A stretch of 64,000 nucleotides of DNA from Guillardia theta CCMP2712 (Eukaryota > Protista > Cryptophyta), in contig NW_005434554.1 in the NCBI RefSeq assembly GCF_000315625.1, forward strand, positions 123,297 to 187,296, written 5' to 3'. Every line of letters begins with the position of its first letter. Positions within the stretch are counted from its first letter, which is position 1. The notes beneath the pieces are model-generated. The model was not told the DNA's origin, ran no database searches, and was given only the letters and a program-made list of their open reading frames with translations. Both the position numbers and the translations under genes were made by a program. Below are positions 1-61,212 of this stretch, in pieces.

Positions 1-173
1 AGGAGGAGGGGGAGGAAGAGGACGAGGGAGGAGGAGGAGGAGGAGGAGGAGGTGGTGGTGGTGGTGGTGGTGGTGGAGGAGGAGGAGGAGGAGGAGGAGG
101 AGGAGGAGGTGGAAGAGGAGGAGGAGGAGGAGGAGGAGGAGGTGGTGGTGGTGGAGGTCTGACAATTCCCAAG

Positions 174-4801
<4,628 letters not shown>

Positions 4802-47893: not shown

Positions 47894-50800
47894 ATGAACG
47901 AAAAGGGTAAGAGGATAAGCAGGATGCTCGGAGCGTCCGTTGCCTTCCTCTGCCTTCTCGCCCATTCTTCGTACGTCTCTTCCTCTGCTCTCCTCCCGCT
48001 GGTCAAGAACCCGGCGGTGTACTCGCTCGATGCTCGGTGACGACAGATGTGCTTCCTCGCGGCCAGCAGTGACGTGGAGGACAGGATCATGGTGTCGGAA
48101 CTGAAGCTGCGGCTGGGCAACCAGGCGACTATCAACGAGATGGCAGACGAGGACCTTGACGAGTGAGAGAGGGGAGGAGAGCAAGGGCGCGGGAGGAGAG
48201 CAAGGGCGAGAGTGGAGAGCAGCGTGTATGAGGCGTTTCATGGAGAAGGGGTTGGAGAGAAGTGGGAGGAGAAGGGGGGAGGGGAGGGGAGGGGAGGAGA
48301 GGAGAGGAGAGGAGAGGAGAGGGCGAGGGCGAGGGCGATCTAATGGGTGAGGCAGCTATGCTGAAGCTGGTTTCGACGCTCTCTGCTTGATGGGAGTCTG
48401 GCAGCCGAGCAAGTTCAGCCTGCAGAAGTCAATGAAAGGAAGCGGAGGAGGCGAAGGAGCAGCCACGGCAGCTGCTGGAGCAGCCAGCTCTCCATACGCC
48501 ATCGTCGATTACTCTGTGAACAACGAGTTCGGCGGGAACTTGGCGCTGGCAAAGCTGCGCAGTAGATTGCACGAGCGAGGTCAGATGGAGGAGCCTCCGG
48601 AGAGGAGAGGGGAGGAAAGGATAAGGGAGGGGAGGGGAGGGGAGGGGAGGAGAGGAGAGGAGAGAGGAGGAGAGAAGAAGCGAGGGGAGGAGAGGAGAGG
48701 AGAGGATAGCAGGTGAGGGGAGGAGGAAGGGATGCTGACGATGGGGCAATGGGGGAGGACAGAAGTTGTTGTGGATGGGGAATGAGTAATGACATGGCTG
48801 TAGGCCTGAGGTTGTTCCTTGACTTCGTTCCCAACCACATGGCCGTCGACCATNNNNNNNNNNNNNNNNNNNNNNNNNNNNNNNNNNNNNNNNNNNNNNN
48901 NNNNNNNNNNNNNNNNNNNNNNNNNNNNNNNNNNNNNNNNNNNNNNNNNNNNNNNNNNNNNNNNNNNNNNNNNNNNNNNNNNNNNNNNNNNNNNNNNNNN
49001 NNNNNNNNNNNNNNNNNNNNNNNNNNNNNNNNNNNNNNNNNNNNNNNNNNNNNNNNNNNNNNNNNNNNNNNNNNNNNNNNNNNNNNNNNNNNNNNNNNNN
49101 NNNNNNNNNNNNNNNNNNNNNNNNNNNNNNNNNNNNNNNNNNNNNCCCCCCACACCCCTCTCTCCAGGCTCTGTCTTCCCCTCCCCCCAACCTCTTTTTC
49201 CCTCCTTCTCCCTCCTTCTGCGTCCTCTGGACTCTCGCCTACATCATCAGTTTCCTCGCACCTCCCTCACGGTCTCACCTGCCTCTCTGCAGATTCAGGG
49301 CAAGGCAGAGGACTTGGAGAGAGAGCCACAGGTGAGATGAAACGGATTGAGATGAAGTGAAATGACTCCTCCGCCTCCTCTTCCTCCCTCCTCGTCCTCC
49401 CTCCTCCCCCACTCCTTCCTCCTCCTCCTCAGAATTTTTTCCGCGTTGGGTCGAATGTGTTTGCTCATGGGAGGGACCCATACTTTGACGGTTGGGAGGA
49501 TACAGTCCAGTTGAACTACGGTGAAGCGATCTTCCTTTCTACAGTCCCTCTCTTCTTCCTCCTCCTTCCTGTCTCCTTCTTCTATCCTTAATCTCTCCTC
49601 CCTACCTGTCTTCTTCTATCCTCTCTCTTTCGTACATACACCCTTCCACTATCTCCTCATTCTCCTCTCTCGTTTCTCTCCCACTCCTCTCTCCCTCTCT
49701 AAGTCCTCTCCTCCCTCCTCCCTCCTCCCTACTCCCTCTTCTCTTGTTCCTCCCCTCTCCTCCCCTTCATCGTCATGTGATCAAGGTCTTTACAGCAAAT
49801 CCTGATCTGCGCGCTGAGATGTGCACAATCTTAACCAAGATCGTGAGCATCTGCGACGGAGTGAGATGTAAGAATCGCTTGAGGAAGGAGGAGGAGGAGG
49901 AGGAGGAGGAGGAGGAGGAGGGAGTAGTTGCTGAAACCTTTTGTAGGCGATATGGCTATGCTGCTCTGCCCGGTAGATTACTCAACGACCTTTCTCCTTC
50001 CCCCATGCCCCATAGCTTTTCTCCTCCTCCTCCTCCTCATCCTCCTCCTTCCTACTTCAGTCATGAGGAGCGGCAGGACATTCTGGAACAAACGTGGGGC
50101 AAGCACCTCGGAAGTGTTGGCGCTTTCAAGGAGCCGTTCTGGCCTGATGCCATCAAAGTAGCGCGAGCGATTCACGAAGGTCAGAGAAGGAGCGGGAGAG
50201 GGAGAGGGAGAGGGAGAGGGAGAGGGAGAGGGAGAGGGAGAGGATGGTAGAAGAAATTAAGTAATGAAGGGGGTGGGAGGAAGAGGGAGAAGAAGGAGGG
50301 AGGGAGGGAGGGAGGGAGGGAGGGAGGAGAGTTCCTCTGAGTGTGATTGTACAGATTTCATCCTCATGGGTGAGGTCTACTGGGGAAGGGACTTGGACCT
50401 GCAGCAGTTCGGGTTTGACTTCACCTTCGACAAGAACCTCTACGACAAGTGCATCGAAGGAAACGCTCTCGCCGTCCGCCAGCACCTCGGCACACCGCTT
50501 CCTTCCCAGGTTCTTCCCTCTTCGCTCCCCCGCCCCCCTCCGCGCCTCTTCCTCTGGCCCCTCTTTCACCAACGCCTCCTCCTTTCTCTCCGCTTCCACC
50601 AAGACATTCTTCGCTTCCTCCTCTTCCTCCAGCTATTTATCTCACCTCTCCCTCTCCCTCCCTCCCTCCTCTCCGCGTCCTCACGCTTCTGGTCTCACGC
50701 ATGCGAGCAGGACCGTATGGTGCGCTACCTTGAGAACCACGAAGAGAAACGGATAGCTCAGGCAAGGCGGAGGAAGAAGAGGAGGGAGAGGAGGCGAGGA

Positions 50801-51661: not shown

Positions 51662-54600
51662 GTGATGATGGTGATGACGATGATGGAGATCATGATCATG
51701 ATGGTGATGTAGATGATGGAGATGATGATGATGGTGATGTAGATGATGTAGATGACGATGATGATGATGGTGATGTAGATGATGGTGATGGTGATGGTGA
51801 TGGTGATGATAGAGATATTGAGATGTGCATGTAGATTTGCATGTGGATGTGGATGAGAAGGTAGAGTTTGTGGAGGAGGACGAGAGTCAATCGCATCCGA
51901 ACAAACTTCTTACCGTCCTCCATCTTCGAATGAAGGCGCACAAATCCACCTGCCACGTCATCGCATCACATACAGCAACCAACACTCCTCCGACCTGAGC
52001 TGCGACCACTAGCTCCCCATGGGAGGGACCGGAAGGAGGAGGAGGAGGAGAAAATTCGACAGACGACAGCTGACTGGAGAGATCTTGCAGCTGCTGCCGA
52101 TCCGACAGGTCGAGCTCCTCCGGCTGCAGCTCCTGCAGATGTTCTCTGACGAACGTTCGTACGATCTTTCTCAGCTCTTCCTTCCTCTCCTCTGGTATCT
52201 CTCCCCTGCTGGTCAAAGTCTTCAAGCACTTCCTGCCATCCCTGGTCACTACGACCGCCGAACTTCCCCTGCTAGCTACGGTCCCACCTGACCCTGACCG
52301 CTTCCTTGTCCCTCATCTCAACTTCTGATCGGCTGGAATGGAGCGGTGCACTGCACTCGAGAGCAAGCTGGGAGGCTGATCAGGAGGAGGAGGAAGGAAG
52401 GAGGAAGATCGATTCAGTTCACCTCTCTCCTCAGCTCGTTCGCCTTCATGTCGGCGAGTTGCATACATGCCGTGCACAGCAGGACGATGTCGTGGCTGGA
52501 GCGGCTTTTCAACACCTGCTCTGGAATCTCAGCAGAAATTTCCACATCTTATCTCTCACGATGTCCAACCTCCCTCTCAGACACGCACAAATCCCTTCTC
52601 GCCTCCTTCACCTGTCTTGCTCCTCTTGATCCTTTTCTGGATCCTCCTCCTCCTCTCCCTCTCCCTCTTCTTGTTCTTCTTCCTCGTCCCCGACTTCCTC
52701 TTCCTCATCTTCCTCCTCCCTCCTCTTCCTCCCCCTACAAATCTCCTTCACCTCCGGGAAGTGACGACGGTAACAGTGCGGTACGACGCTGTGCCTGTGC
52801 AGCCCCTGGCCGCTCCCGCATCGAACGCAGATGTTCTCCTTGCTCGACAGGTAGTACTCGTTCCCTTCGTGTCCTCTCCCCTTGGGCTCGAAACGCAGGC
52901 GGATAGCAAACTGCCTTCCCTCCATGCAGCTACAGCTCAGCTCGTTCAGATCGACGATGTTCTTCCTCTGCCGATTGCGCCTGCCGCCGTCAGGATCGCT
53001 GTCTTGCTGGTGCTGAGTGGTTTGCCCGGCCTTCCCTCTCCCTTCTTCAGCACATCCAGGGCTGTGAACAACATCTGCAAGCATCTTTCAGCAAGGGAAG
53101 CCAGCACAGGCTGGTAGCAGCGGAACACGCAGAGGAGGAAGCAACAACAGTCTCAACCTGCGAGCTCATGGTTGATGTACCAGAGGATCCTGTCGATCTT
53201 GATGTTGCTGAGCTGCCTCCCTTGTGGGTCCTGCGGCGCAAACAAGACAAGGTGAACTGAATCAAGAATGTGCAACGCTGGCAGGAAGAAACAGGTACAA
53301 GCGAGGCAGTGGAGGGGATGGAAGCTGGTACCAGCAGCATGCAGTTGTGGTATAAGCTCGTCTGCCTTGTAGCAAGCTTCGAAGCTTTCTCCTTGTGTCC
53401 ACTCCTCCTCCTCTTCTCCTCCTGCTCCCGCTCTCTACCTACACTACTTGTGCTCTTTTTCACCCTCTTTCCCCGCTTGTCTTCCCCAAACGGAACGTCA
53501 ATCAAGTGAGCATGACAACTCGCAGGGTGCAGACTGCTCCATCCCCACTGCAAGCTTGGATGCGTCCAATGCAATGACGAAGATTCTCCTCCTCCACCAC
53601 AACCACCAGCTCCTCCTCCTCCTCCTCCTCCTCGTTGTGTGAACGCCTGTATGATCAGGACTTACGAGCTACCAAGGGCAAGCAAGAAACCAATCATACT
53701 CACCATGTACAGGAAGACACTCACGAGCGCATCTTCAGCGGCATACAAGACCTGGCGAGGCATCAGCCTCGTCATCAACATGTCAGGAAGGGTCATGTCA
53801 CTTGTTCCTCGCCCAGCGTTTCTGCTTGCCAGTCACTCGTCGTGATGCGCTGCACTGACGTCAGCCTTGAGATCAACGTCATCAGCTCGCACCCTGTCCT
53901 TCCTCAAGTCGATGGAGAAGTGCTTGGCAAGAGACTGAGCAAGGGTCTTACTTCACTTCCTCGTCCTCACAACCAGCTGCTTCACCTTCAAGCCGAAAGC
54001 ATCGACATTGTAGAGGCTACTCAGCCATCGCAAGTCCAACACCGACCTTGAGTCATCAGCGCTCACGTCAGCCAACTTGCCGATAGTTTTGACCCGAGTC
54101 ACCTTGTCTTGACCCCCAGCGTCTTCTCCAGCCTCTCCGCATCCTGGGGAAGGAGAACAGTGAGCGAGTTTGATCTCAGCTGCCGCGACGTACATGCATG
54201 ATGTTCACTCCGACTTTCACGATGCTGACCTCACTCAGCAGCTGCCCAAGTCTGTGGAGCCGACACGGTGCGGAAGACCTGAGGGCTTGTGCAAGCTGAA
54301 TGACGAGGGTAAGGTCCTCGCATGAGAGCTCGACCCTCCCTGTCAGGTAACAGACATGACAGTAGAACCAACTACCTGCAGTACAGACACTCGTAGATCT
54401 CCGCTCTCTTCGCTCCCGTCCTCCTGGCTGTCAGTAGCCTGCGATCCTGCGCAACGTCGTCTGTCAGGAGGGACTTGCTTGCTTGACCGCAGCTTCACCC
54501 GAGCACCACTCTGCATCGAGACCGACGACAGTGGGAAACTTGGAGAGGAGGAGCGACACATCGGCCTCGATGCTCTCACACGTTCGGCTCACCTTCACTA

Positions 54601-54907
54601 ACACCTGGCCATGTCAATGGTCACTCCCCTCCATGAAAGGCACGCAGAGGTACGAGGGAACATAGCAGGTCAGGAGTCAGGAGTAGGGGATCACTAGGAC
54701 GAAGGAGAGGGTTTCGAGCGAAGGCCAAGTGGGAAGCTGCAGGGAGGATGGACTCATGTCATGCCATCGACGTATGCTGTAGTGAGGATGCCTTACCCTC
54801 TTGTCTCCTAGGAGGGTCAGGTACTCTCCTCCCTGTGACTCCTTGGGCGTCACGTCTCTGCTCCACCAGCCTCGGACCAACACTGCGAGCAACCAACTCC
54901 ATCCCAT
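51421..54907 (-). CDS. EXD2: EXD2-like DEDDy 3'-5' exonuclease with C-terminal HNH-like Zn domain, multi-exon
   Basis: VVGLDAEW (ExoI), VKVGVNI, VLDL, LYAAEDA (ExoIII); TSLYHNCML; LRFEPKG..YYLSSKENICVRCG..HSVVPHCYRRHFP; HDIVLLCTAC; HGELVV..FIRRWR|MFLEWLDPQHLPRGW. Start could extend upstream toward the gap. Confidence 0.87.
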
Positions 54908-55614
54908 GTATGTCTTTATCTGCCGAGACAGCGCTCCAATTAGCTTCCGTATCGCTTCTGTGTCCGGTTCTGGCCCCTCCTTTCCTCCCCACTTCACTCC
55001 CTCTCTCCCTCCCTCCCTCCCTCCCTCCCTCCCTCCCTCCCTTTCTNNNNNNNNNNNNNNNNNNNNNNNNNNNNNNNNNNNNNNNNNNNNNNNNNNNNNN
55101 NNNNNNNNNNNNNNNNNNNNNNNNNNNNNNNNNNNNNNNNNNNNNNNNNNNNNNNNNNNNNNNNNNNNNNNNNNNNNNNNNNNNNNNNNNNNNNNNNNNN
55201 NNNNNNNNNNNNNNNNNNNNNNNNNNNNNNNNNNNNNNNNNNNNNNNNNNNNNNNNNNNNNNNNNNNNNNNNNNNNNNNNNNNNNNNNNNNNNNNNNNNN
55301 NNNNNNNNNNNNNNNNNNNNNNNNNNNNNNNNNNNNNNNNNNNNNNNNNNNNNNNNNNNNNAGCTGCCATTTTCTCCTCCACTCGTGATCGTGAGATGCG
55401 TGATCGTGGAGGGTGGTCCTAGTGTAGGCGCTGATATCATCTTACCTAAGGGTATCCGGGTTGCTCTGCGAGCAGCGGGTGATACTTCGTATTGAAGAGC
55501 AGGATAGGGTGGGGTTGGTGCAAGGGAGCTGGGTGGGGCTGTGGGTGGGGTGGAAGCGATGATTTTGGTGGGTCCATGTGCAGGCGGTAAGCTAGGTGCG
55601 ACGCACAGGATGGA

Positions 55615-57414
55615 ATGAGGGATGAAGGAGGAGGAATGGTGAAGGGAAGAGCTTGTGAACATGAAGAAGCAGACGATGGAGGAAGGGAGTGCGAAGAGAG
55701 TGATCTGAAAGAGGAGTGCGCACACCGTGAGGAACCACAAACTTGCCATGAAGGATGTAACGGCCAGGAGAAGATCCCGAGCCAATCTTGTCAGCTCTGC
55801 TCCGTGCTAGCCTACTGCTGCTTTGTCTGCCTCAAGCCCTCAAAGAATAAAGAAAAATGCAAGGATGAGAAGCTCTGCCCAGGCGGACTACAGCACAACT
55901 CAAAGGATCAATGCATCCAGCTTCTTCAAGCAAAAGGCAACGAGATCCTCGAGACATTCCTACAGGCGAATTTGACGAAAGAAGAACTCAAGCGCTTCAT
56001 ACAAGAGCATAAGATGAATAGACGGGCTTGTTCGAATGGCCGAGGAGTACTTCTCACAGGAAGCAAGCGAGAGCTGATTGCTGGGATTGCCAAGGAGCTA
56101 GAACAATGCGAGCATGACTGGCCTTGTTCGGTTACTATAGTCGGTCAAGATAATGTCAGACCGATTTTCGTGCGACGCAGGCTATCTCAGGCAGAGCGAA
56201 AGCACATCTTGCAAAAGACCGACGGGTACTGCTATCTCTGTAGTCGCCCTATCGCTCCGGGATCGCTATGGGACGCGGACCATGTTCTTGCTTTCGTTCA
56301 CAACCCCGAGAGGAACGACGTCGTCGGCAATATGCTCCCTGCTCATCCGAGCTGCAACCGCTCCAAGGGATGCCGCTCCCTCACCTGGTGCGCCAAGAAC
56401 TTATCTATCTCCACCAAGGTGATAGAGAACATCGGCTCGAACGTCGCCACGTTCGTGAAGGACGAACTGCACGATGCACTGAAGCTGAAGCACCGGTTGA
56501 AGAAGACCTCAGACAAGACCACGGAGCAGGCTTTGATTGACGCCAAGGAGGACGAGGGCTTGATCCACGAAATCTGCGACGAGCTACAGGGGCTCGTCAA
56601 GAGGGGAATCGACATGTCAAAACAAGTCCGCTTCATTGAAGATGGTGAGGTGAAGGGGGCTCTCGTTGCGATAGTCAAGGGCGGATCCTCCAAGGTGTAC
56701 AAGAGCAAGGTGACCATTGGCGGCGAGGATATCGTCTGTGCACTCAAGGATGTGCGTCAAGACCGCGAGAAACTCGAGCGAGAAGCCTACATGCTTGAGA
56801 GGTGTCGGCATGAGCATGTGGTGAAGTGCTACGGGATCATCGCGCTCAAGGGCGACATCCCCCAACAAGTCCTCGTGCTCGAGTACATCGACTTCACGTT
56901 GGCGGAAGAGGGCAGCGGCAAGGGGCCGAGCGGCCGGGAGATCTTCTGGAGGGAAGCGGTCAAGTCGGTCTCAGCTCTTGCTCGTGCCATACGACACGTG
57001 CACCGAATGCAGGTGCTCCACCGAGACATCAAGCCTGCCAACGTGCTGGTGAGCAAGCGGGGCGACGTCAAGCTTGCAGACTTCGGGGAGAGTCTCCTCT
57101 CAGACGATAGCGAGATCGCTCCCATCGTCGGAACGGAAGGCTACGTCGCACCGGAGCTGGAAAACCTCGGGGCAGTGCACAGCTGCGCCTCGGACGTGTA
57201 CAGCTTTGCCAAGACGTTAGAGACCTCAGGCCTCAAGTTTCTCATCGACGTGCGGGAGGATGCCTTGTTCTTCAAAGCACTGACGGCAGAATGCACCGTA
57301 CGCAATCCTGATGCGAGGTTGACAATGGATGCCGTGGTAGCCAGGCTCGAACAGTATGAGGCGGAAGAAAACAGAACCATGCAGAGCCAACCATTGAGGG
57401 GAATCAGCGTATGA
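55615..57414 (+). CDS. Cys/His cluster + SAP-like + HNH endonuclease + Ser/Thr protein kinase fusion, copy 1 (intronless)
   Basis: HNH: RRRLSQAERKHIL..GYCYLC..DADHV..NMLPAHPSCNRSKG. Kinase: CALK, REAYML, HRDIKPANVL, DFG, GTEGYVAPE, SDVYSF. Confidence 0.9.
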   Translation: MRDEGGGMVKGRACEHEEADDGGRECEESDLKEECAHREEPQTCHEGCNGQEKIPSQSCQLCSVLAYCCFVCLKPSKNKEKCKDEKLCPGGLQHNSKDQCIQLLQAKGNEILETFLQANLTKEELKRFIQEHKMNRRACSNGRGVLLTGSKRELIAGIAKELEQCEHDWPCSVTIVGQDNVRPIFVRRRLSQAERKHILQKTDGYCYLCSRPIAPGSLWDADHVLAFVHNPERNDVVGNMLPAHPSCNRSKGCRSLTWCAKNLSISTKVIENIGSNVATFVKDELHDALKLKHRLKKTSDKTTEQALIDAKEDEGLIHEICDELQGLVKRGIDMSKQVRFIEDGEVKGALVAIVKGGSSKVYKSKVTIGGEDIVCALKDVRQDREKLEREAYMLERCRHEHVVKCYGIIALKGDIPQQVLVLEYIDFTLAEEGSGKGPSGREIFWREAVKSVSALARAIRHVHRMQVLHRDIKPANVLVSKRGDVKLADFGESLLSDDSEIAPIVGTEGYVAPELENLGAVHSCASDVYSFAKTLETSGLKFLIDVREDALFFKALTAECTVRNPDARLTMDAVVARLEQYEAEENRTMQSQPLRGISV

Positions 57415-57595
57415 CCCTTGCTTCCCTTGGAGTCAAACAAACTTGCGGAGCCCGGCATTCCGTCTTCCGAAGTAAAGATAAAAAGTCTGAGGCACTGGTA
57501 AGATGATCTTAGGGTCCAAAGTTTACCCTAATCAAAAGTCTCCGGAACCACCCTGAGACTAATATTTTCAAACAAGAAGTCTCGTCATAGTTCGC

Positions 57596-58210
57596 TGCAG
57601 CAGCTTCAGTTGAGGTATAAGCTTGTCTGCCTAATAACAAACCTCGAGGCTTTCTCCTTGTGTCCACTCCTCCTCGGTCTCCTCCTCTCGCCCTCTGCCT
57701 AAGCTTTGAGCATTGACGAAGACTCCCCTCCTCCTGTGAGGGGCATCAGCCTCGTCATCCACATGTCACGAAAGGTCAGGTCACTTGTTCCTCGCACAGC
57801 GTCTATGCTTCCCCATCCCCCGCAGTACAGACACCCGTAGATCTCCGCTCTCTTCGCTCCCGTCCTCCTGGCTGTCAGTAGCCTGCGATCCTGCGCAACG
57901 TCGTCTGTCAGGAGGGACTTGCTTGCTTGACAGCAGCTTCACCCGAGCACCACTCTGCATCGCGACCCACGACAGGAAAACAACTATGACGGAAGAGAGG
58001 GTTTCGAGCGAAGGCCCAGTGGGAAGCTACGTAGCTGGCGAGGGAGGATGGACGCATGTCATGCCATCGACGTATGCTGCAGTTAGGATGCCTAAGTACT
58101 CTCCTCCCTGTGACTCCTTGGGCGCTACGTCTCTGCTCCACCAGCCTCGGACCAACACTGCGAGCAACCAACTCCATCCCATGTATGTCTTTATCTGCCG
58201 AGACAGCGCT
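57596..58210 (-). pseudogene. Internally deleted partial copy of the EXD2-like gene
   Basis: Collinear blocks match ~53333-53410, ~53757-53830, ~54378-54518 and ~54700-54934, with the intervening parts missing. Confidence 0.85.
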
Positions 58211-58591
58211 GGTTAGATCAGCTCCTGCTCTACCTCTATACGGATCATTCTTATCTCGTATCCGTATGACGACATGGTCGTTACCACCAGACGCAATTTC
58301 AGAGTAACCACGGAGCTGGTAGACCACCTTGGTGCAACAAACTGTTTTGGGGTTATACCACCCCACCCCAGGTACTAGGTGGATGAAAGTACCCGTCAGT
58401 CAGCTGTACCCCAGTAGTCTCCCAGTCAGTTACTACGATTAGCAGCACAGACTTCTTGGAGGGGGGGTACGTCGTAATGGAGGGGTGAGGGTGTTAGGAG
58501 TGAGAGAGATGTGGGGTATTGGTGGGGTAATAAGAGGTAAATTAGGGGACTGATGTGAGATGGGGTATTACGAGTAGGTGGGGTTGTATGA

Positions 58592-60511
58592 ATGCTGGGG
58601 TCCCTGGTGATAGCATGCGGACAGTTACAAGTCAGGCACGAAGGAGAACGCATGGAGAAGAGAGAAGCCTGCGAAGGAGACGGAGAGGTGAAGGAGAAGG
58701 GGAAGAAGAAGAAGAAAGATGAGGAGGAGGAAGAGGAGGAGGAGGAGAAAGATGATGATGTTGAGGAGAAGAAAGATGAGGAGGAGAAGAAGGAGGAGGA
58801 GAAGAAAGATGTGGAGGAGATGGAAGAGAAGAAAGATGACGAGGAGAAGGAGCAGGGGAAGAAGGAGGGGAAAAGCATCAAAGAAAGGAAACAAACTTGT
58901 GAATCCGAGAACGAATCTTGCCTGCTCTGCTCCGTGCTAGCCTACTGCTGCTTTGTCTGCCTCAAGCCCTCAAAGAATAAAGAAAAATGCAAGGATGAGA
59001 AGCTCTGCCCAGGCGGACTACAGCACAACTCAAAGGATCAATGCATCCACCTCCTCCAAGCAAAAGACAGATTGACCCTCGAGACATTCCTAAAGGCGAA
59101 TTTGACGAAAGAAGAACTCAGGCGCTTCATACGAGAGCATAAGATGAAAAGGATGGAATGTCCGAATGGCCGAGGAGTACTTCTCACAGGAAGCAAGCGA
59201 GAGCTGATTGCTGGGATTGCCAAGGAGCTAGAACAATGCGAGCATGACTGGCCTTGTTCGGTTACTATAGTCGGTCAAGAGGATGTCAAACCGATTTTCG
59301 TGCGACGCAGGCTATCTCAGGCAGAGCGAAAGCACATCTTGCAAAAGACCGACGGGTACTGCTATCTCTGTAGTCGCCCTATCGCTCCGGGATCGCTATG
59401 GGACGCGGACCATGTTCTTGCTTTCGTTCACAACCCCGAGAGGAACGACGTCGTCGGCAACATGCTCCCTGCTCATCCGAGCTGCAACCGCTCCAAGGGA
59501 TGCCGCTCCCTCACCTGGTGCGCCAAGAACTTATCTATCTCCACCAAGGTGATAGAGAACATCGGCTCGAACGTCGCCACGTTCGTGAAGGACGAACTGC
59601 ACGATGCTCTGAAGCTGAAGCACCGGTTGAAGAAGACCTCAGACAAGACCACGGAGCAGGCTTTGATTGACGCCAAGGAGGACGAGGGCTTGATCCACGA
59701 AATCTGCGACGAGCTACAGGGGCTCGTCAAGAGAGGAATCGACATGTCAGAACAAGTCCGCTTCATTGAAGATGGTGAGGTGAAGGGGGCTCTCGTTGCG
59801 ATAGTCAAGGGCGGATCCTCCAAGGTGTACAAGAGCAAGGTGACCATTGGCGGCGAGGATATCGTCTGTGCACTCAAGGATGTGCGTCAAGACCGCGAGA
59901 AACTCGAGCGAGAAGCCTACATGCTTGAGAGGTGTCGGCATGAGCATGTGGTGAAGTGCTACGGGATCATCGCGCTCAAGGGCGACATCCCCCAACAAGT
60001 CCTCGTGCTCGAGTACATCGACTTCACGTTGGCGGAAGAGGGCAGCGGCAAGGGGCCGAGCGGCCGGGAGATCTTCTGGAGGGAAGCGGTCAAGTCGGTC
60101 TCAGCTCTTGCTCGTGCCGTACGACACGTGCACCAAATGCAGGTGCTCCACCGAGACATCAAGCCCGCCAACGTGCTGGTGAGCAAGCAGGGCGACGTCA
60201 AGCTCGCAGACTTCGGGGAGAGTCTCCTCTCAGACGATAGCGAGATCGCTCACATCGTCGGAACGAAAGGCTACGTCGCACCGGAGCTGGAAAACCTCGG
60301 GGCAGTGCACAGCTGCGCCTCGGACGTGTACAGCTTCGCCAAGACGTTAGAGACCTCAGGCCTCAAGTTTCTCATCGACGTGCGGGAGGATGCCTTGTTC
60401 TTCAAAGCACTGACGGCAGACTGCACCGTAGACAATCCTGATGCGAGGTTGACAATGGATGCCGTGGTAGCCAGGCTCGAACAGTATGAGGCAGACAGTG
60501 TTGACCAGTAG
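58592..60511 (+). CDS. Cys/His cluster + SAP-like + HNH endonuclease + Ser/Thr kinase fusion, copy 2 (intronless, E/K-rich N-terminus)
   Basis: Near-identical to copy 1 from ~58925 to ~60492, with all motifs retained. Confidence 0.9.
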   Translation: MLGSLVIACGQLQVRHEGERMEKREACEGDGEVKEKGKKKKKDEEEEEEEEEKDDDVEEKKDEEEKKEEEKKDVEEMEEKKDDEEKEQGKKEGKSIKERKQTCESENESCLLCSVLAYCCFVCLKPSKNKEKCKDEKLCPGGLQHNSKDQCIHLLQAKDRLTLETFLKANLTKEELRRFIREHKMKRMECPNGRGVLLTGSKRELIAGIAKELEQCEHDWPCSVTIVGQEDVKPIFVRRRLSQAERKHILQKTDGYCYLCSRPIAPGSLWDADHVLAFVHNPERNDVVGNMLPAHPSCNRSKGCRSLTWCAKNLSISTKVIENIGSNVATFVKDELHDALKLKHRLKKTSDKTTEQALIDAKEDEGLIHEICDELQGLVKRGIDMSEQVRFIEDGEVKGALVAIVKGGSSKVYKSKVTIGGEDIVCALKDVRQDREKLEREAYMLERCRHEHVVKCYGIIALKGDIPQQVLVLEYIDFTLAEEGSGKGPSGREIFWREAVKSVSALARAVRHVHQMQVLHRDIKPANVLVSKQGDVKLADFGESLLSDDSEIAHIVGTKGYVAPELENLGAVHSCASDVYSFAKTLETSGLKFLIDVREDALFFKALTADCTVDNPDARLTMDAVVARLEQYEADSVDQ

Positions 60512-61212
60512 TGTTGTCGTTTTTCTTCACGAAATAAAGGTGACTTGACCCAACTTGGCAACATCATAGTAATCAACGGTTTGCGCCGGTGCTGCCCCGG
60601 ACAGTTTACGGATCCGACATATGTGAGCAGTGCCCGGCCAGTCAGATAGCGCCGAGTTACCAAAACTCTCCTGTAAACGTTTTGCAGACGAGCCTCGGAG
60701 GGCCTCCCCAGCTGTCTTGCTGAGGCTCCCTTTACAGTGTAGAGCCGTACTACGGTACAACAGAAAAACAGGGGTACTGTAGTGGGGAGGTGGTGTGTCC
60801 TTTAAAAAGGGGTCGTCGTTTAACAAAGTCATGCAGACTGCTGAAGCCTCCTTCGCAGCTTTGGATCGATCACAGGATGGCAGCCATGACATCTCTGCAG
60901 GATCATCACGTCGCTGCATTCCTTGATTGGTACCAAGGGAGTTTGAGCAGCCTTAGTGTAGAGCAAGAGAGCTAAACAAGGCGGGCCTGGCAATGATACT
61001 TTATTGAAGAAGGGCAAACCGGGCCCGGCAAACAAAGGAGGGGGAGGATAAAGCCTACCGTTGAAAACCGCCTCAATAAAATACTAGGAAACGAAGGAGG
61101 CAGCGAAAACCGCTACTCCAACACTACTCAGCTCAGTGACTGCGCGTCACTCAGTCTTCCGTAAGTTCCGCCGCCGGGGCTCACTGAGTGCCCGCCATGC
61201 CGGGATGTTCTA

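Follow-up and report, generated by a model that had tools for sequence, protein, structure and literature searches.

The window analysed here comprises 64,000 nucleotides (nt) of the cryptophyte Guillardia theta CCMP2712 (contig NW_005434554.1, positions 123,297 to 187,296) and carries, in tandem on its forward strand, two open reading frames (ORFs) of 599 and 639 amino acids (aa) at positions 55615-57414 and 58592-60511 of the window, referred to below as gene 1 and gene 2. Sequence comparison shows that both are genuine genes and belong to a small family, so far traced to eukaryotes, in which an N-terminal HNH domain is followed by a helical linker and a C-terminal protein kinase that looks active. 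The reading that we tentatively favour, with somewhat less than even confidence, is that of a kinase-coupled HNH DNA nuclease acting together with the product of a head-to-head exonuclease-like gene in genome conflict or DNA destruction. Fusions of nucleases with kinases are rare, and those that have been studied (RNase L and Ire1) act as key switches in immune and stress responses. The analysis defines a compact, conserved pairing of a DNase-type HNH domain with an active-looking kinase across several distant protist groups and provides a family signature, a confident fold model, direct evidence for transcription of gene 1 and a candidate partner enzyme in the same genome.

Both ORFs are intact and free of internal stops, and every sequence motif that an earlier note on this DNA had quoted was found again in both proteins. 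Gene 1 is laid out as an acidic N-terminus, a Cys string, a helical segment, the HNH domain, the helical linker and the kinase; its motifs are the Cys-rich stretch (aa 61-73), LTKEEL (120-125), GRGVLLTGSKRELIAGIAKEL (142-162), CYLC (206-209), DADH (220-223), GNML (238-241), AHPSCNRSK (243-251), KGGSSKV (355-361), VCALK (374-378), HRDIKPAN (469-476), DFG (489-491) and APE (512-514), and gene 2 has the same set at an offset of 51 aa. The two proteins are 92% identical over 553 aa, and the underlying DNA (55784-57365 against 58914-60495) aligns without gaps at 97.5% identity, diverging at the extreme ends. The N-terminus of gene 2 is new, containing an acidic low-complexity segment of E, D and K encoded by a GA-rich imperfect repeat (family D1; 58674-58880, forward strand), and its last five codons and 3' flank are unlike those of gene 1. 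A metagenome orthologue, P0002, is 83% identical to gene 1 and has both termini in common with it, which makes gene 1 the older form. A third paralogue, of 615 aa and 48% identity, is found on contig C168 and brings the total to three copies in the genome assembly searched (87.1 Mb, 669 contigs).

On profile and model evidence the HNH identification is sound, because the family profile, the fold model and the conservation of the catalytic and zinc-binding residues agree. A profile built from four close sequences (A1) and searched against 1.84 billion cluster representatives recovered 427 proteins (E<1e-3), of which 58 reach E<1e-10, with homology across the representatives extending over the HNH core and ~45-90 residues beyond it. 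PF01844 matches 41 of the 56 best relatives (best E 8e-8), and a 67-sequence family profile finds the solved HNH structure 4h9d in PDB (E 2.5e-4), followed by Cap5 and Cas9. The same 67-sequence alignment was used for the AlphaFold (AF2) model, the version from the four-sequence alignment being unusable (predicted local distance difference test score, pLDDT, of 43); in the model used, pLDDT exceeds 90 throughout the HNH domain. VIA places this domain nearest to eight Cas9 HNH domains (Z 10.6-8.7, 97-99 aa, root-mean-square deviation, rmsd, of 2.4-2.9; at the best Z of 10.6, 98 aa and rmsd 2.4-2.6), followed by Cap5, McrA, Gme HNH, IscB and the retron and Septu (PtuB) HNH domains, with the human ZRANB3 HNH at Z 5.5. 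Foldseek agrees with an HNH fold (probability 1.00). Together with its family-specific helical extension the domain occupies 56170-56500 (aa 186-295) in gene 1 and 59300-59630 in gene 2, where the core protein sequence is identical; the HNH itself, which the earlier note had set at 56173-56370 and 59303-59500, recomputes to 56170-56367 and 59300-59497.

In gene 1 the zinc ligands correspond to C206, C209, H244 and C247 and the catalytic residues to D222-H223, N239 and N248. The catalytic Asp/Glu-His pair, with the His as general base, both Asn (one structural, one metal-binding) and the zinc ligands (CxxC, [C/H]xxC) are nearly invariant in the 67 family sequences and are present in all three genome copies (in one relative, P0138, an Arg replaces the catalytic His), and from sequence and model the domain looks catalytically competent. 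Its beta-beta-alpha-metal treble-clef fold with flanking helices, and the layout CxxC ... DH ... N ... [C/H]xxCN..K, are common to the HNH domains of Cas9/IscB and McrA/Gme (PF01844/PF13395; 7mpz, 9mb6, 6ghc, 4h9d). However, identity to these is only 16-23%, and the present family is distinguished by a signature of its own (W-H/D-x-[ED]-H-V-x-A-F), a helical extension of ~45 aa, the fusion to a kinase and eukaryotic membership, and by the absence of a RuvC domain, a guide RNA and a DNA-modification reader.

The kinase is placed at 56677-57330 in gene 1 and 59807-60460 in gene 2, with PF00069 matches of E 3.5e-28 (99.2 bits) and E 3.1e-29 (102.6 bits) against a cut-off of 31.7 bits, which, with the family-level HNH evidence, bears out the proposed fusion of an HNH domain to a Ser/Thr kinase. 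The match takes in positions 9-184 of the 263-position profile; past APE the C-lobe is divergent. The VAIK Lys, the alphaC Glu, the HRD Asp, the catalytic-loop Asn, DFG and APE are all kept in genes 1 and 2 and in the C168 paralogue (in gene 1 K378, the alphaC Glu, HRD 469-471, N476, DFG 489-491 and APE 512-514), and on these grounds the kinase looks active. The glycine loop is degenerate, as previously noted: in our alignment to the conserved Val it reads V-K-G-G-S-S-K-V and retains only the central Gly of three; the canonical GxGxxG is found in relatives from other lineages. Such a loop is compatible with kinase activity without being proof of it. The closest solved kinases are MEK1/2, MST and Snf1 at ~1e-15, and the domain is a divergent eukaryotic protein kinase without a close subfamily. 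A single origin of the fusion is not demonstrable from the kinase, as at 28-36% identity the family's kinases score no differently from the best unrelated ones. PADLOC and NCBIfam return generic kinase models only (MAD6, PD-T4-6, PknB), together with PtuB and IscB HNH matches in relatives, and do not discriminate.

HNH domain and kinase are joined by a helical linker (56501-56660), for which AF2 predicts two long helices; among relatives the gap between the two domains varies, with a median of 84 aa. A homodimer prediction for aa 176-599 scored 0.00, a value that weighs neither for nor against dimerisation. A resemblance of aa 290-325 of gene 1 (window 56320-56430) to the DEP domain of DEPTOR (PDB 7dkl, E 0.17) was taken as chance.

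Within the reach of the searches, the fused family is a eukaryotic one, thinly and patchily distributed. Among the 149 best representatives, 35 bear a kinase, invariably C-terminal to the HNH domain; a protein kinase family match is present in 35 of the 56 best relatives, and the family-specific extension in 49 of those 56, compared with 5 of the remaining 93. The HNH domain starts within 60 residues of the N-terminus in most relatives. Named members come from the chrysophyte Mallomonas annulata, the amoebozoan Sexangularia sp., the choanoflagellate Mylnosiga fluctuans and one MMETSP transcript, and by the names of their sources (EukProt, MMETSP, UniRef) are presumably transcriptome-derived. 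A whole-protein word search is swamped by kinases, its only full-length matches being the gene's own product and one orthologue. No description of an HNH-kinase fusion was found in the searchable literature, with an earlier mention within surveys of Crinklers being possible; in agreement with the earlier note, which did not recognise the architecture, no name was found and the family appears to be unnamed. Its sparse and patchy spread, as far as searched, is not that of a widespread housekeeping family.

Further members lie on metagenome contigs, and the neighbouring genes on one of these (L014) are of an ordinary eukaryotic kind. Three paralogues that have diverged from one another (40-55% identity; L100:10001-11860, L015:10001-11833 and L017:10001-12238, from Joint Genome Institute (JGI) metagenomes 3300056827 and 3300056825) are carried by gene-dense, apparently intron-free contigs of 56-280 kb with a guanine-plus-cytosine content (GC) of 58-64% and nearly identical tetranucleotide use (r 0.93-0.98). 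Their neighbours are mostly without a Pfam match, making these contigs ORFan-dense, and one neighbour, a protein of 714 aa, has no relative among 5.8 billion proteins. Such contigs could belong to a giant virus or to an unfamiliar protist.

The earlier note had raised a possible horizontal acquisition. A recent transfer from bacteria or phages finds no support in prokaryote genomes, in IMG/VR or in the GC of the region, which is ordinary, and the relatives that carry the signature are eukaryotic. Across 185,579 bacterial and archaeal species (one genome each) the signature leads to a single confirmed locus, L099:1961-4939, which encodes an HNH-kinase of 992 aa with an extra tail of ~600 aa on a contig filed as an 'uncultured bacterium' metagenome-assembled genome; the genes of this contig look eukaryotic, and it is probably eukaryotic and mis-binned. 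In IMG/VR, none of the 73 confirmed HNH loci that were fetched carries a kinase, these loci being short HNH cores on contigs of mostly phage size, and the protein P0160 has no close relative there. By eye, the tail of the L099 protein, in which Pfam finds nothing, has G..GKS and DLPG motifs and resembles a dynamin-like GTPase.

Gene 1 is transcribed as an unspliced mRNA of ~2.07 kb, because bounded contigs align to it with zero gaps and sense reads cover its 3' end. The evidence comes from small assemblies of runs X1, X2 and X6, from three studies, which were taken as RNA by guess. Contigs of 2069 nt (X1; 55558-57625), 1856 and 217 nt (X2; 55607-57649) and 2074 nt (X6; 55580-57653) are colinear with the genome, with 0 mismatches and 0 gaps, and coverage is zero beyond both limits. 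They are read as transcripts because the units are bounded and a nearby spliced joint has minus-strand GT..AG ends, as transcriptomes give. The resulting unit, 55558-57653 on the forward strand, has a 5' untranslated region (UTR) of 57 nt and a 3' UTR of ~210-240 nt, and sense-strand reads of X19, a run of 3'-biased RNA sequencing (RNA-seq), also fall on its 3' end. That the genes lack introns, as claimed for both, is shown for gene 1 by the colinear contigs, and the expectation of expression is borne out for the same gene, while transcript support for gene 2 is weak: a low-depth contig of 316 nt (58638-58953, X2) and a few 3'-biased X19 reads (60179-60532).

The coding sequences are under constraint. 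Genes 1 and 2 differ at 40 positions, of which 21 lie within the N-terminal 119 codons, with an identical HNH core and a ratio of nonsynonymous to synonymous substitution rates (dN/dS) of 0.68. Between gene 1 and P0002, dS is 0.17 and dN 0.085, giving a dN/dS of 0.50 overall and 0.36 in the HNH domain, the most constrained part of the protein. As judged from these comparisons, the gene is constrained yet faster-evolving than typical housekeeping genes.

Head to head with gene 1, on the reverse strand, lies a multi-exon gene (53329-54865) that resembles 3'-5' exonucleases of the DEDDy type. Its conserved exons are placed at about 54785-54865, 54494-54607, 54182-54331, 54102-54146, 53968-54057, 53443-53586 and 53329-53397, and its short introns with GT..AG ends agree with the description of the neighbourhood as intron-dense. 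The motifs ExoI to ExoIII occur in the right order (VGLDAEW; IVKVGVNI; SDWQAETLGEEQ and VLYAAEDA, joined across a GT..AG intron of ~50 nt) and in the Y-x3-D form, as in the DEDDy exonucleases WRN, Mut-7 and EXD2 (PF01612), and tblastx matches the gene to the PF01612 gene that this genome carries on contig C57 (E 3e-4, two colinear motif blocks). In contrast to those enzymes, it has no Pfam match on single exons or in a six-frame PF01612 scan of the genome, and a two-sequence profile finds no match in PDB. Because all three are negative, it is called exonuclease-like and not EXD2, an identity that was considered and set aside; support at the level of motifs and paralogue remains. On C168 an exonuclease-like paralogue occupies the same divergent position beside the third HNH-kinase, and within ~10 kb the two loci have nothing else in common. 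The pair has thus survived an old duplication, both loci keeping it while their HNH-kinases have diverged to 48% identity.

In the favoured reading, the HNH domain would nick or cut DNA and the kinase in the same chain would gate the nuclease, through autophosphorylation or nucleotide-dependent activation, or would mark nearby proteins. The head-to-head 3'-5' exonuclease would enlarge the nicks and degrade the DNA, and the lineage-specific N-terminus (Cys string and helical segment) would control where the enzyme is located. The setting would most likely be a genome conflict that ends in DNA destruction, directed at foreign or viral DNA or, as an abortive response, at that of the cell itself. 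We infer DNA cleavage, kinase regulation, cooperation with the exonuclease and the conflict role alike. A conflict role fits better than one in core repair because of the patchy spread, the multiple diverged copies (three paralogues in this genome and at least three in the ORFan-dense environmental genome), the lack of introns, the accessory ends that vary among family members, the moderately fast evolution and the relatedness of the HNH domain to nucleases of defence systems and mobile elements, none of which is decisive.

Several points weigh against it. Taken alone, the window proteins score only 17.5-19 bits against PF01844 (E 0.0016-0.0047, profile positions 1-45 of 47), below the cut-off of 21.4. 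The exonuclease assignment is drawn from motifs and one weak paralogue match, and on four further contigs with family members no exonuclease pairing is listed. For gene 1, the contig depth of 1340 in one run, depth being a poor measure, points to steady expression, which sits badly with a toxic DNase that is not firmly held in check. A dN/dS below 1 indicates constraint rather than an arms race, and a role in DNA repair or replication stress fits the same anatomy.

The closest working likeness, by analogy, is Cap5, and more loosely RNase L and Ire1; the family is a member of neither group because it has no SAVED and no KEN domain and, relative to RNase L and Ire1, carries its domains in the opposite order. 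Cap5, a CBASS effector of HNH-SAVED architecture (7rwk, 8fm1), has an N-terminal HNH domain with a closely similar opening (R-x-x-S/T...W...G-x-CYLC; profile E 0.005), and its logic, a nuclease joined to a C-terminal regulatory domain, is like that of the present family as far as sequence and model reveal it. Unlike in Cap5, a kinase takes the place of SAVED, which has no match in the window proteins, their C-terminal part being filled by the kinase; there is no sign of a cyclic-nucleotide system, and the family is eukaryotic, in contrast to the bacterial Cap5. In RNase L and Ire1, too, one chain combines a nuclease with a kinase-fold domain, which in those proteins is a kinase or pseudokinase. 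In these enzymes, nucleotide binding by the kinase domain and dimerisation turn the nuclease on, which might serve as a working analogy for how the kinase acts here. The suggestion of an RNase L/Ire1-type protein nevertheless fails on the nuclease: KEN (Ribonuc_2-5A), the C-terminal RNase of those enzymes, has no match in the window proteins, the nuclease has a DNase-type HNH fold and lies N-terminal to the kinase, ankyrin and lumenal sensor domains are absent, and homology is confined to the kinase fold.

A more ambitious proposal, which we regard as unlikely, is that the HNH-kinase and the divergent 3'-5' exonuclease form an innate-immunity module of protists: a kinase-gated DNase, triggered by infection and destroying viral or own DNA, as a eukaryotic counterpart of Cap5-type effectors whose relatives would be spread over distant protists and perhaps also giant viruses. 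Should gating by the kinase prove true, the family would represent a novel form of control over DNA cutting in eukaryotes and, for algae, in which little is known of innate immunity, a candidate antiviral defence. If the genes instead encode a repair factor or are selfish, the family would still be an unannotated one, whose members are labelled just 'protein kinase' in databases.

A repair role is the alternative that survives best, although we consider it rather improbable. The proteins would be enzymes of DNA damage or replication stress, with a structure-specific HNH nuclease as in ZRANB3 and an exonuclease of WRN/EXD2 type taking part in resection or fork processing while the kinase signals locally. 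The conserved pairing with a DEDDy exonuclease-like gene, the presence of the human ZRANB3 HNH among the structural matches (Z 5.5), the seemingly steady expression and the purifying selection, strongest in the HNH domain at a dN/dS of 0.36, are all in keeping with this role. However, a core factor would be expected in most eukaryotes, and among 1.8 billion representatives the family comprises a few dozen clusters at 50% identity, from few, scattered taxa; it is multi-copy, quickly diverging and intronless with variable ends, and the pairing is not seen beside relatives elsewhere.

Less probable still is a selfish or formerly mobile gene, derived from a homing-type HNH, a Crinkler-like toxin cassette or a giant virus and transferred between protists with little benefit to the host. 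Intronless genes within an intron-rich genome, a patchy distribution and HNH folds whose nearest relatives come from mobile and defence systems would suit such an origin, as would the three or more paralogues on the intron-free, ORFan-dense contigs, which are possibly viral. In AeCRN13, an HNH-like motif damages host DNA. HNH and kinase domains have been reported among the C-terminal modules of Crinkler (CRN/CR) effectors, eukaryotic proteins that combine nuclease (restriction endonuclease, REase, or HNH) with kinase modules as the present family does, and CRN-like proteins are also found outside pathogens (PMC5289972, PMC12957317). However, the Crinkler-type affiliation raised in the earlier note falls at the N-terminus, where the ubiquitin-like (Ubl)-fold LxLFLAK header of Crinklers was not detected and no signal peptide is apparent; Crinkler-family Pfam models match neither the window proteins (E up to 1) nor the 56 relatives (E up to 0.001). 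Around the two genes no terminal repeats or transposase were found, the flanking inverted repeats being low-complexity only, in a region of ordinary GC. The kinase missing from all 73 IMG/VR loci, the stable retention of the gene pair at two old paralogous loci and the evident coding constraint also speak against a selfish gene. Finally, a DNA- or chromatin-tethered kinase whose HNH domain binds nucleic acid without cutting it, a fate suggested by eukaryotic HNH folds that have lost activity, such as the teneurin C-terminal domain (PMC3417536), and by the Arg of P0138, is very unlikely given the near-invariance of the catalytic His, both Asn and the zinc ligands, kept in all three genome copies, in what is the protein's most constrained part.

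The segment that precedes the HNH domain is particular to this lineage. Residues 55-175 are common only to the three genome paralogues and one metagenome orthologue; the module (aa 55-170) has no homologue elsewhere in the genome, gave no lead in Atlas and has no significant match in Pfam or PDB. It contains a Cys-rich hydrophobic stretch (aa 61-73; 55795-55833, forward strand), conserved in 4 of 4 lineage members and modelled at low pLDDT, with 5-7 Cys within 15 hydrophobic residues (7 in the C168 paralogue) between acidic and basic flanks. The earlier note had read it as a zinc cluster, a motif reading with no significant profile or fold match behind it; the stretch could equally be a zinc knuckle or a membrane anchor of the cysteine-string type, attached by S-acylation. 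The helix-linker-helix segment that follows (aa 120-162; 55972-56100, forward strand), its helices predicted by AF2 at low confidence, had been called SAP/HEH-like. PF02037 does not match it, and its PF18953 (SAP_new25) matches (E 0.056 and 0.019; 13.5-15 bits against a cut-off of 26.3) stay below threshold, with two helices split by an insertion and no significant fold match, which leaves SAP/HEH a tentative reading of motifs. P0180, a family member that is otherwise unrelated and has an N-terminal extension of 290 aa, shows a weak PF18953 match before its HNH domain (166-189, E 0.0026), which keeps the SAP idea alive without proving anything. An N-terminal stretch resembling Snf1 kinase (E 0.78) was taken as chance.

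Between genes 1 and 2, on the reverse strand, lies a remnant of the 5' part of the exonuclease-like gene (57742-58210), left by the tandem duplication and traced by blastn in three blocks (53759-53830 to 57742-57813, 89%; 54375-54531 to 57819-57975, 97%; 54693-54935 to 57983-58210, 82%). X2 and X6 contigs fall in three pieces on 57822-58210, each with 1-2 mismatches; one joint skips 52 nt with CT..AC ends, equivalent to a minus-strand GT..AG intron, and a second contains 97 foreign letters. These contigs are probably transcripts of the intact exonuclease-like gene (54375-54935) placed on the truncated copy.

The region between the exonuclease-like gene and gene 1, which would hold their shared promoter, includes an assembly gap of 315 N (55047-55361), and the intergenic distance is approximate; it is one of eight gaps in the window, the others being 1946-2640, 4024-4552, 48854-49145 and four 100-N runs. 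Downstream of the exonuclease exons, an open stretch of 159 aa on the reverse strand (52611-53087) shows a Cys/His pattern (C-x2-C ... H-x-H ... C) and, after it, an acidic tail. The stretch has no Pfam match and no counterpart at the C168 locus, and might belong, as an additional exon, to the neighbour or to a separate gene. On contig L013, which carries the orthologue P0002, a divergent ORF (3-314, reverse strand) lies ~100 nt upstream of the P0002 gene; judged by eye, it is similar to proteases of the subtilisin type (G-T/S-S-x-S-A-P motif), so P0002 does not have the exonuclease as its neighbour. Just downstream of gene 2 (60637-60700), X19 reads that start at 60637-60641 have unmatched leading letters, and 14 of 14 show C>A at 60660, a pattern that would fit the edge of an exon in a different transcript, or an origin of the reads at a paralogous site.

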